A stretch of 61,841 bases of DNA, filler included, from Choristocarpus tenellus KU-1152 (GCA_964200185.2; 6 parts of 6 records of this genome joined end to end with filler, not necessarily neighbours in it), one strand, 5' to 3'. Positions 32,201 through 37,356 are shown, counted from the first letter of the whole stretch. Numbers and translations: made by a program. The notes: a model not told the origin generated them from the letters alone.

Positions 32201-34021
32201 ATCGAAGAATATATTATTCTATAATGTCATCACAACTCAAGAAGAAGGGTTCCAAAGGGTCTCATCTAACCCTTCACATGGATTTTTTTTTGTAGTTATC
32301 CACTATCAATCTAACCAAGCCATTAACATTCATAAGTAACCTGGCCACTGCTATCCTTGTTTCTTGCACGCCTCTTCTAGTCCATCCCAATTAGTCAAAT
32401 CTTCTCAAACCCACCATAACGTGATCTATAGTGAGGAGACCTTCTTTCCACCCACTCATGGATAACTCATAAGAAACCTCTTCTCGTAAGTGTGAGATCC
32501 TTCCCTCTGGTCTTCGCCACTGTACACCTGAAACTTGACAGGAATTGGGATTGGACGCTGCAGGCCCTCTCCTTCAGTCGTGGTTTGGGTTGGGGTTCTC
32601 CTAACTGTTCCTCTTCATCATCGTAGAACCTGGCTTAAACTTCTTCACCTTCATTTTCTATTGCTATAGCTCGGGCTATGGCTCTCTCAACTGCACCCGC
32701 TCTGAACCACATCCGACCTTACCGATGGCTGCTTCCATTCTGATTCCTTCTTCAATCGATTCACACTAGCCTTCAGACCTCAGCACACTATGAAGAGATT
32801 TGCCTAGAATTTCAAAAAGTTGTTTCCAAAGACTTGTGTATGTAAATATCTTGAATATTTCCCAACTAGCTGGAAAGGGTGAGGGTGTAGAACGGAGAAG
32901 AGAGGAAAGAACCTTGTCAATAAAAAGGGGGCGCCACCTTGCCAGCAATCCTACCTTAGAACTGCTGTTGATTGTATTAATATCTCACACCTCACACACC
33001 TTTGTCGTTCTCTTCATCACTTATTTGACTGTTTCTTATGTAGTCTTTAGCGTAAGAGTCAAAAACATATTCTTGACCATCCTATCCACTTAAGTGTACA
33101 GGAATGGGATAGATTTCCTACACTTTTCTAATGGGACTAGTGCAAGTACGTGATCAATTTCTGTTCCTCCAATGAACCTCCGTAATACTTCTATTGTAAA
33201 CAATCAACTATACATCCTCCTATGAATTAGTCCTTTTCTAATAAGTATTTGGACATATCTGATAGGAAGTTATTCTTCCATCTCCTTGATATCTAATGAG
33301 AGGATTTATGCAAAGTCATTCATAATTAAAGGTTCTATGTAGGAATTTCCTACTTTCTCATCTTCATACAAACAAACTAGATGTTTGAAGGATGAGGAAA
33401 AAGTACAAATAGTTTCCCAGGAACCGTTTTCTTTGTTGGTATTGAAGGGATTGGACAATAGTAGCAATATATTTTTCTATTATTATTTAAACTGCGGGTG
33501 AGAGTTAACAGAAATGACTGGTTCTCATTAGGTAGAGGGTGAATGTTGTTCGTGTTCGTTTCTCCTCACCTTCAACTGTGTGATGTTGTTGGAAAAACAG
33601 AACAAAGTGAATTGTTTCGGCATTTCCTCTTGGATGCTGTATTCTTGAGGTTCAGTCTATGATATGTTACAAATTTTTGTGTCGTACGTCACTTAGGATG
33701 TAGGAAAGTGTGTATTACATAGTAGGGTGTTTGCAAGCAGGATATGTGTAAACGTTTGCTTAGATTTTGAAAATGAACCATTTTAAAGGCAGCCTCCATA
33801 CCACAAACAATGCTTATATGCAGAAGAACCAATAAAATCGATTGAGGTCGTTCGTTGACACTTACTGTCCTATTATACAACTGTGTATGTACATAAAAGT
33901 ACATTTTTGGAAACTCAAAATGACATACAGATGCGTAGACATAGAGGCAAGCTTGCACATCCAACACATCAGAGTAGATGCTGTTGGATATTCCACTGAA
34001 ATATTACCCCATGCACTGTAG

Positions 34022-36139
34022 GGCAACTACGGGGAAGCTGACCCATTGTACCAGCGGTCTCTCGAAATCAGGGAAAAGGTACTGGGGCCGGACCACCCAG
34101 GCGTGGCTTCTTCTTTGAACAACTGTGCAGGATTGTTGCAGGCTCAGGTGACAAAGCAAATATCCTGGAGTGTATTGTGACTGTGTTGTTGAGACTCGAT
34201 TGACCTTAGATTTTGTGTACACCCTACCTTGGATGGGATGTAGAACTTGACGTACAGAATACCCACTTGCATAGTCTACATGTTTGAAGTCAATTATATA
34301 TGCCCAATCAGTTATTTCATAATGCAGGTACTACACGAAGGTGCGTTCCTTAATCTGTCCATAAAGAATTTGCCATCCTTCTCTGATTCAAAACCGAAAC
34401 ACTGATCTCTCAACTTAAACCTTCAACTCGTCCACCCTACTCTCTTGAATGGTTTTGTGTTTGTGTCTGATTTTATATCCCCTTTGGAGATGATGTACCC
34501 AATTCCACATGGAATGTGGACCAACTATTTCCAGGTTTGTTTTCATCTAAACAGTTTGTGCTAATATGCCATATTTTTTGCCATGCATGTGGGGGGTAGG
34601 AATACCAAAGTAAGGATGGAATTATTGTGTACTGTACTTGGAAGGAGAAGGGATATAGATGCTAACCAAGGTGGTGGAACTTCCTCTTCTTGATGTGGTT
34701 TCTTATGTACTGGTAATAAATGTGCAGGAGAATGCATGTGCGCTTAATGACCTGGCACTGACACTTTCTGAGTGGTGTGTGAGCTGCATGTAGACCTACG
34801 GGTAGGATGGGTGGCAAAAAACCTGATACGGCATATGGACGTGTAGACTGAGAGGCCAGGTTGCATGTTCAACAAGTTAGAGACTGTGCTTTGTTGGATA
34901 TTTCAACAACAGACTACCCCATGCACGTCCCTAAGCCAAACCAAACTGAGAGGTAAGCAGGTTTGGACCCTTTTGCAATCTGGGTAATTTTTCTTACCCT
35001 GTACAATACACTCTTATTTCAATGCTTAATGTGCAAAATAGTGTGTATGCAAAATTGATACTCCACTTTCCACACACAAATTGACACCACAAATGCAAAG
35101 TCTCTTTTGGCAATTGCACAAAAGACCTTTCTTGTCCTTTCGTGGGATCCTTAAAATGCAACCTTGCATATCTCTCAATTCATTTGGCTCCATTCCCTTG
35201 CAGGGTAACCTTGAGCAGGCTGACCCATTGTATCAGCGGTCTCTTGCAATAACGGAAAAGGTGCTGGGGCCAGACCATTTAGATGTAGCTTCTTGTCTCA
35301 ACAACTGGGCGGGTCTGTTGGAGGTTCAGGTGAGAAATGAAGTATCCAGGATTTGTCTGTGGGTATATGTTGTTGAGACTTGATCAAGCTCAGATTTTGT
35401 GCATGCCCTACATGTAAGAATTCAGGGTCGTTGGTACAAGGTAGGATAGGTTGGAACTGGGATGGGGAATACTTGTATAAGTATCTCAAGGTTAGAAAGC
35501 CTCTTTGTTTAGCAATACTAGAGTCATGCTAGAAGTATGCAGACAGAAGAATCAGCTCAATCTAAATGATCATGTGTTGACGCTGTATAGCCCATAGTAC
35601 ATTGCGTGCAGGTTAACATTTATGATGTCGACAGCAGTGTGCTCTAAGATGTTAGAATTGTAGCTATGGATGTTGGGAGCAGGAATGCCAGTGTAAAATT
35701 GGGATCAGTGTGTACTTTTCTCAGAAGGAGGATACACGTTACACTGTCTAAGGAAAACGCCTCTATTTAATGCACTTTCCTTGTGCGCTGATATTGTGAA
35801 TGCAGGAGAATGTACACATGCTCGATGATCTGATGCTGATGTCCTCTGACTGATGCGTGAGCTGTATGTACACCTATGGGTGGGTAGGGGACCAAACCTG
35901 ATATGATATGCAAACCTGTAAACATTGTGGTTAGGATGCACATTCAACATGTTAGACTGTGTGCGTTGTTGGATGTGTCACCAACAGACTACCCAATGTA
36001 CTGCTCCCTACAGGGCAACTATGATCAGGCTGCCCCGTTGTTCGAGCGGTCTCTTGCAATCACGGAAAAGGTTCTGGGGCCAGATCACCCAGATGTAGCT
36101 TCTTCTCTCAACAACTTGGCGGTATTGTTGGAGGCGCAG
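34022..36139 (+). CDS. Three 126-bp phase-0 exons, each encoding one 42-aa kinesin-light-chain-type TPR repeat (part of an NB-ARC-TPR-like gene)
   Basis: 34022-34147 [42 protein letters not shown]; 35204-35329 [42 protein letters not shown]; 36014-36139 [42 protein letters not shown]. All have AG|GG...CAG|GTGA boundaries. Confidence 0.9.
34931..35192 (-). mobile_element. MITE family A copy, inserted just upstream of the second TPR exon
   Basis: Its reverse complement aligns along its length with 19839-20101. Imperfect TIRs: gccaaaccaaactgagaggtaagcaggtt and aaccttgcatatctctcaattcatttggc. Confidence 0.8.
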
Positions 36140-37356
36140 GTGAGAAAGCAAGTATCTGGGAATGTTCCTGTAGTTGTCCTGTTGAGACTTGATTGACCTT
36201 GGGTTTAGAACTGTCCTATGTCACTTATGATGTTGGGAGGTTTTTAGGGGGGTGGGTGGGACTTGCAGTGCTTTACTCCAAACCGACTCTTAGCTGCAGT
36301 TTCGTGACCTTTTCTGAACTTCGGACCTGGTCCTGTCAACAGATACATCCCCCGAGCATACCTGTGAGCAGTCATGTCATTCTTTTTTTTGCCTCAGCCT
36401 GGCCCAGGTAAATCACACATTTTCCAGGCTCGAACCTGTCAAAAACGGCACTCTCGATAGGTAGTACTAGGTGGTGCTATGTTGTATATAACAGTACAAT
36501 AGAGACAACATAAAATATTACCTACATTGGGTGGTACTACATGTTATATGTTTTACGTTATGTTCCATTGGTCAACAACTGCCATGTAGTACAATCTCAT
36601 ACTCAAAAAGCACCATGCAATGTCTTACTATTTTTATATTACGTAAGAATACGGATACAGAGGGTGTACCTATATAAGAGAGGCTGATATAAGAGAAAAC
36701 GGGACATAAAAGAGGGTGAATTGCCTTGTCACGACTTTTCAGCTTAAAAGAGAGGTTTTGGTGTTTTCCTGCCAATTCTCTCTTCTATCAAGCAAACTTT
36801 CATTTTTTTTACTACTTGAAAGACAGGTTTCCCAAAAAGCCATGTCTAAGTTAAGCAAAATATAACAAAGTAAGGAACGAAGCTGCTCAAGACCAGCAGT
36901 ACACAACATAGCAGTCTTTTATCTCTCAGTACCGCATAGTACAGTACATACAGTATAACACATCAAGTTTAGATGACTGCATTGTACAAATATAACGATG
37001 CCCTGTGCAGTGGGATCCAGCTGCAACATACAGGGTAATACTCCAGGTATTCCTGGTATCCTCCACTACCGTACTCTCAAGTGGCTGGCGAGTTTGTAGG
37101 CTTAGAAACAACCGCCGAAGAGTGTAGCATCAATGATATTTCATACTATCTCCACAAAGCAAAGCTGAATTGACTCAGTGCAATTTGGGCAAAGGCAATC
37201 AAACAAGAGGACATCTGCAATTTTTATAACCGTCACGATTTTTTTGTTAGCGAAGTTGTTTTACTCAGTGCGTGCAATGGGGGGTACGTGGCGGTGCAGC
37301 TGCATTTGGCTTACGTTGGCGTTTTTGATACTGTACTGCATAATATCCTTGTAGAG

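Follow-up and report, generated by a model that had tools for sequence, protein, structure and literature searches.

In Ectocarpus, a repetitive structure of tetratricopeptide repeat (TPR) exons is characteristic of one clade of 13 NB-ARC-TPR genes, with exons of 126 nt and local duplications within the locus (Zambounis et al., 2012; PMC3341825). The same study describes leucine-rich repeat (LRR) loci of the ROCO type with rearranged homologous intron fragments, reports many pseudogenes, and proposes reservoirs. A later paper notes that neither a somatically recombined locus nor a recombinase has come to light so far, and favours alternative splicing (Teng et al., 2024; PMC11378527). Whether the shuffling of TPR and LRR exons in candidate receptors of brown algae is controlled or passive is still an open question (PMC3341825, PMC13449251, PMC11378527).

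Here, we consider a locus with three TPR exons, E1, E2, and E3, from Choristocarpus tenellus KU-1152 (GCA_964200185.2). It lies on an 8.5-kb piece with a GC content of 41%, at positions 30803-39296 of the analyzed window, a stretch of 61,841 nucleotides in which parts of six records of this genome are joined with filler. With a probability of roughly 0.7, this piece covers the central part of an NB-ARC-TPR-type gene whose repeats arose by local duplication of exon-plus-intron units. The look-alike intron flanks of the exons are most likely remnants of ordinary local duplication that are slowly decaying, and not a bounded mobile cassette. What the locus adds is a further NB-ARC-TPR-type exon array of the already known brown-algal architecture.

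Three TPR exons of the brown-algal type

The three exons are as follows.

34022-34147, plus strand: TPR exon E1, 126 nt, phase 0, 42 amino acids, kinesin-light-chain type (open reading frame bounded by AG and GT; Pfam and PDB matches)
35204-35329, plus strand: TPR exon E2, 126 nt, phase 0 (open reading frame bounded by AG and GT; Pfam)
36014-36139, plus strand: TPR exon E3, 126 nt, phase 0 (open reading frame bounded by AG and GT; Pfam)

Each exon is exactly 126 nt long, is preceded by AG and followed by GT, has no stops in phase 0, and scores above the Pfam cutoff for TPR_10/TPR_12. By Pfam and PDB matches, the repeat belongs to the kinesin-light-chain-type TPR, with 42 amino acids per exon. 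A preliminary description of this DNA had recognized the same three exact phase-0 exons with one repeat each, and its reading is borne out. Pairwise identity is 77-83% for DNA and 31-32 of 42 residues for protein. The variable residues named in that description do differ between the exons; its statement that only a few positions vary does not hold, as 15 of 42 are variable. Positions 7, 11, 17, 27, 31, 35, 37, and 40 vary both here and in two related loci, L004 and L010.

The named matches to the exons come from the brown algae Nemacystus, Hapterophycus, and Ectocarpus sp. 6, and identity to brown-algal proteins or related single-exon open reading frames is 67-82%. In one related locus, L012, an NB-ARC domain (E 3e-5) is followed by 13 intact exons in whole exon-plus-intron units of ~255 bp. 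Together with the 126-nt phase-0 exons and the brown-algal matches, this supports the earlier assignment to the Ectocarpus-type architecture of one TPR per exon.

The locus resembles the brown-algal NB-ARC-TPR genes (PMC3341825; Teng et al., 2023, as cited in PMC11378527) in having 126-nt, phase-0 exons that each encode a single 42-residue TPR and all lie on the coding strand, in the level of identity, and in local duplication within the locus. It differs in that the contig has no NB-ARC exon and the introns hold no dead or 102-nt TPR-like exons. The GC content of related brown-alga-type loci is 49-56% versus 41% here, the introns here are longer and repeat-laden, and the Ectocarpus-type intron motif is not detectable in the flank sequence of the window. 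Inactivated TPR exons in introns are a sign of shuffling and are not required for membership in the family. On the piece, sensitive nucleotide and protein profiles (nhmmer, hmmsearch) find only the three intact exons and no fourth TPR exon, live or dead; in the flanks, the same searches find no hidden dead exon and at most a short exon-tail remnant.

Two other described systems are more distant. Brown-algal ROCO-LRR genes with 72-nt exons (PMC3341825, PMC11378527) likewise carry one repeat per exon and homologous intron fragments duplicated with the exons, but the repeat is LRR rather than TPR, and the inverted intronic exons and traceable intergenic recombination of the ROCO loci are not seen here. 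Fungal NOD-like receptors with high-internal-conservation WD40 or TPR repeats (PMC13449251) have arrays thought to change by unequal crossing-over and a similar 42-residue type of TPR (PDB 4y6c). However, the fungal repeats are highly alike and are not described there as one per exon, whereas here the repeats are exons and are only 77-83% identical.

Shared intron flanks

Each exon, taken with its flanks, forms a cassette. The flanks are given below.

33911-34021, plus strand: upstream intron flank of E1, 111 bp with clear homology to both others, faint possibly to ~33640; the acceptor region is 7 nt shorter than that of E3
34148-34227, plus strand: downstream intron flank of E1, homology over 66-80 bp, conserved 14-nt block at 34187-34200
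34552-34932, plus strand: upstream intron flank of E2, ~385 bp homologous to the E3 flank (66%), displaced from E2 by an insertion
35330-35411, plus strand: downstream intron flank of E2; the S-L-N-N codons of the exon are complementary to the 14-nt block conserved at 35371-35384
35635-36013, plus strand: upstream intron flank of E3
36140-36206, plus strand: downstream intron flank of E3, conserved block at 36180-36193

As the preliminary description had stated, the cassettes are embedded in homologous upstream and downstream flanks, with similarity well beyond what chance would give (blastn E 1e-51 to 1e-11; z=32 for the far-upstream flanks of cassettes 2 and 3). The uniform ~200 bp that it reported upstream was not recovered. 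Measured by gapped extension outward from the splice sites, upstream homology covers 111 bp for cassettes 1 and 2, 111 bp for cassettes 1 and 3, and 387 bp for cassettes 2 and 3; the downstream values, in the same order, are 80, 66, and 68 bp. Beyond its 111 bp, cassette 1 retains a faint upstream tail of homology (z 2-3.6), a case of graded decay. Intron 2 is 684 bp long, and about 460 bp of it, or about two thirds, can be aligned with intron 1. The spacers between cassettes, described earlier as unrelated, are indeed so in a local test (z 0.2-0.9), but a weak collinear match continues through spacers 1 and 2 (z 2.3, 28 of 1000 shuffles). The failure of the spacers to align is due in part to a repeat held by spacer 1.

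34370-34500, no strand assigned: multi-copy repeat fragment in the spacer of intron 1, edges approximate (depth 180-500 vs ~20; contig breaks at 34374-34403)

A 51-nt stretch of the form AG...GTGAG in the upstream flank shared by cassettes 2 and 3 (~34728-34778 and ~35806-35856) was considered as a dead TPR exon and rejected, its profile score being at noise. This stretch is weakly like a TPR end, and is open in cassette 2 and interrupted by a stop in cassette 3.

The divergence of the flanks is comparable to that of the synonymous sites of the exons. Synonymous divergence (dS) is 0.82, 0.56, and 0.45 for the three exon pairs, the lowest value belonging to E2 and E3, and the ratio of nonsynonymous to synonymous divergence (dN/dS), in the same order, is 0.19, 0.28, and 0.30, overall values from three sequences, which are too few for site models. 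Flank p-distances of 0.33, 0.36, and 0.33 stand against synonymous p-distances of 0.50, 0.40, and 0.34 (Fisher p 0.07, 0.84, and 1.0), a comparison of low power, since each pair offers only ~31 synonymous sites. E1-E3 group together in a 69-exon tree as a window-only clade (100/99), which may partly reflect species and base composition, and E2 and E3 are sisters (99/81). This sister pair also has the longest shared flank and the lowest dS.

The mosaicism of exons and flanks anticipated in the preliminary description did not reach significance in a breakpoint test of exon versus flank history (permutation p=0.14, three cassettes). An origin of cassette 2 as a chimera from unequal crossover was rejected, the same value indicating only a trend.

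A transposon-like insertion in the E2 acceptor region

Miniature inverted-repeat transposable elements (MITEs) are a class of non-autonomous DNA transposons. Cassette 2 contains a candidate member.

34933-35190, no strand assigned: MITE-like non-autonomous DNA-transposon insertion, 258 bp, in the E2 acceptor region (depth, terminal inverted repeats, target-site duplication)

The insertion is short and non-coding, ends in imperfect terminal inverted repeats of ~30 bp, and is bordered by a target-site duplication. In public contigs of this organism, its depth is 1400-5000 versus ~20 for its neighbours, and 80 contigs depart from the window exactly at its right end, 35190. With these features it counts as a MITE-like element, inserted into the E2 acceptor region; it differs from MITEs in that the target-site duplication is either 5 bp exact or 8 bp imperfect. 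The element separates the upstream flank of cassette 2 (34552-34932) from E2, which the preliminary description overlooked. At its right end, the element brings in pyrimidine-rich sequence as well as a possible branch-point motif, and splicing of E2 may thus continue.

Related arrays and copies in other samples

Searching with each exon singly, we gathered related loci whose arrays are built of units of different sizes. Besides the ~255-bp units of L012, the repeating unit is 252 bp in L001 and ~700 bp in L004 and L014. Positions 300-7825 of L004 comprise 11 tandem units with about 73% identity, each with one intact and two decayed TPR exons, while the Ectocarpus loci L010 and L011 are patchwork arrays. 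Flank homology in other arrays extends over 3 to 700 bp, and none was found in L002, where exon identity is 47-61%. The unit sizes and the flank survey indicate that in young arrays of the family the flanks are usually duplicated along with the exons, that unit size is locus-specific, and that flank homology fades with exon divergence. The flanks of the window themselves were not found in the related loci by blastn or profile search. Ectocarpus-type flanks were detected in reads of another organism from the same study.

The exons at L010 3524 and L011 11620 have a distinctive downstream intron in common and occupy different positions in the exon tree, and are probably a genuine mosaic of exon and flank like those described for Ectocarpus. 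L005 and L006 contain 42-residue TPR units with intron-like boundaries in a different sequence style, and perhaps come from eukaryotes other than brown algae.

The stretch is present in two public runs, X1, which probably represents the source sample, and X2, possibly of the same strain. The contigs of X1 tile 33000-36740 in the assembled order without differences, and the pieces of X2 agree with the assembly wherever they cover it; this agreement is weak evidence of invariance, because the runs may represent the same strain. Exon order is also identical between two samples at the related loci L002/L003 (99.9%) and L012/L013 (99.4%). Thus, the variation in exon order between samples that the preliminary description envisaged was not observed. 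Dispersal of the flanks as a mobile module was not seen either: at 80% likeness the flanks show 1-2x single-copy depth, and E3 with its upstream flank about twice single-copy depth, where depth in public contigs is not true copy number. One X2 contig of single-copy depth joins a cassette-1-like upstream region to an E3-like exon. This hybrid-type contig and the doubled depth over E3 point to a few paralogous cassettes elsewhere. A metagenome search with the junction pattern returned only two unrelated short contigs.

Probable origin of the array by local duplication

The TPR solenoid would have grown as exon-plus-intron units were duplicated locally by unequal crossing-over or by slippage between repeats. 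An older duplication would have split E1 from the ancestor of E2 and E3, and a younger one E2 from E3. With every exon 126 nt long and in phase 0, a further copy lengthens the protein by one 42-residue repeat without shifting the frame, and hence copies would be tolerated. Purifying selection would then have retained the added exons. The co-copied intron DNA probably drifted at about the neutral rate, its middle being lost to indels and repeat insertions, and cassette 2 would have received the MITE-like insertion. The ends of the gene presumably lie on other contigs.

The preliminary description had instead proposed a mobile or recombining module of ~400-450 bp, a proposal that our results do not support. 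Its boundaries differ by pair of cassettes both upstream and downstream, flank divergence is close to synonymous divergence, cassette 2 is broken by the transposon-like insertion, the flanks are not scattered through the genome as highly identical copies, and the units of related arrays are of many sizes. Largely, flank similarity decays as in neutral tandem duplication, the pattern that the same description had set against its own proposal.

Several observations weigh against local duplication in an NB-ARC-TPR-type gene. NB-ARC, start, and stop exons were not recognized with Pfam on the 8.5-kb piece, as already stated in the preliminary description, and ~3 kb on each side of E1-E3 are without a TPR exon. 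The middle parts of the two introns have no significant alignment. All three downstream flanks end near the same point, +66 to +80, and a 14-nt downstream block in all three cassettes stands out from its surroundings by higher conservation (permutation p=0.02). Finally, flank identity was taken from optimized alignments and set against few synonymous sites, so that modest flank constraint is possible (p=0.07 for E1 and E2).

The first of these observations bears on two alternatives. One is that E1-E3 have been severed from their parent gene and persist as an orphan relic or donor reservoir, present in no mRNA. No other exon of the gene is recognizable on the piece, the surroundings are repeat-rich, the E2 acceptor region is disrupted, E2 alters otherwise fixed framework residues, and no RNA run is among the public runs on record for the stretch; the pseudogenes and proposed reservoirs of Ectocarpus (PMC3341825) offer a precedent. 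Nevertheless, we consider this origin unlikely, as the exons keep their length, frame, and both splice dinucleotides despite dS of 0.45-0.82, with dN/dS of 0.19-0.30, unlike the visibly decayed dead copies in L004, L010, and L011. Moreover, in a fragment of only 8.5 kb whose introns are laden with repeats, missing exons are expected.

Under the other alternative, the exons are part of an intact TPR gene whose N-terminal domain is of another kind or missing, and the putative receptor role would not follow. This would account for the lack of NB-ARC on the piece, and it is in agreement with a repeat type common to kinesin light chain and many bacterial proteins and with a similar 126-nt exon in the compositionally different contig L005. 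However, in Ectocarpus such an exon structure marks the single NB-ARC-TPR clade (PMC3341825), and the related array L012 carries NB-ARC. We regard this as the least probable of the explanations considered.

The 14-nt block and possible RNA structures

The 14-nt block is complementary to the LNN codons of the exon, and a consensus 10-bp exon-intron stem spans the donor site. Compared with shuffled sequences, this stem is stable in E2 (z -3.45), while the donor regions of E1 and E3 fold worse than the shuffles (z +2.25 and +1.79). A consensus 13-bp hairpin is located 40-75 nt before the acceptor in all three cassettes (33955-33990, 34866-34900, and 35938-35978) and is not significant per copy (z -0.3 to -1.1). 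As conserved RNA hairpins, these candidates were rejected, none but the E2 donor stem being significant; three related copies cannot show covariation.

The block has the look of a dead exon-tail copy, such as follows the donors in L004, L008-L011, and L014. The exon tail is itself complementary to the LNN codons, and in the L004 remnant the pairing is lost. In an anchored test, positive mainly for E2, the first 40-60 intron bases of E2 hint at a likeness to the intron-start motif seen in other brown-algal arrays (z 3.0-3.4).

This motif is common to the first 110 nt past the TPR donors in L004, L008, L009, L010, L011, and L014, where it is followed by a dead exon tail and a dead donor. It spans several samples, including Ectocarpus sp. 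6 and reads of another organism, and its persistence across species may merit separate attention.

One conceivable scenario is a selected element within the 70-80 intron bases directly behind each TPR exon: the 14-nt block would pair with the LNN codons across the donor, tuning exon inclusion or steering gene conversion, and would descend from the intron-start motif of the TPR exons of other brown algae. We regard it as very doubtful. If true, such an element would give a sequence-level handle on whether receptor shuffling is controlled, and a functional block would be a testable cis-element for the question of controlled versus passive shuffling.

More generally, the flanks might together make up a bounded module under selection, one that drives a controlled exchange of exons or their regulated skipping, for example by hiding the donor through pairing of the block with the LNN codons. 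Controlled shuffling is the working hypothesis of the field, and the common downstream end, the conservation of the block, the strong E2 donor stem, and the consensus hairpin before the acceptor all fit such a module, as do the X2 hybrid-type contig with the doubled depth over E3 and its upstream flank, and the E2 hint of the motif of other arrays. On the other hand, upstream extent differs 3.5-fold from pair to pair, the flanks are not significantly less diverged than synonymous sites, two of the three donor regions and the upstream hairpins lack stability, and the block, like a dead exon tail with intrinsic LNN complementarity, has a counterpart in L004 that no longer pairs. The mosaic test is not significant, profile searches with the flanks of other arrays match nothing in the window, a transposon-like insertion is tolerated inside one module, and order and sequence are as assembled in X1 and, where covered, in X2. 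A bounded module is thus improbable, and passive duplication is the preferred explanation of the flanks.

Other features of the piece

Other open reading frames of the piece have no Pfam match, the piece has no Rfam match, and Tandem Repeats Finder reported nothing on it. At 36640-37199 and beyond, very high-depth repeats (1600-5100 vs ~20) lack clear terminal inverted repeats. At 37900-38433, a pair of 21-nt inverted repeats, 95% complementary and 492 nt apart, possibly marks the ends of another small transposon. On the minus strand at 31700-32900, broken frames and a degenerate zinc-knuckle-like Cys/His motif near 31850-31890 perhaps represent a retroelement gag relic, with no Pfam match. 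The GC-richer region at 38550-39000, also with broken frames and no Pfam match, is possibly another transposon relic.

Implications

Taken together, this locus and the related arrays point to passive duplication of exons with their introns, in units of many sizes. For the family of candidate receptors in brown algae, the C. tenellus array is no new system; it counts, in a small way, against a dedicated cassette at this locus.

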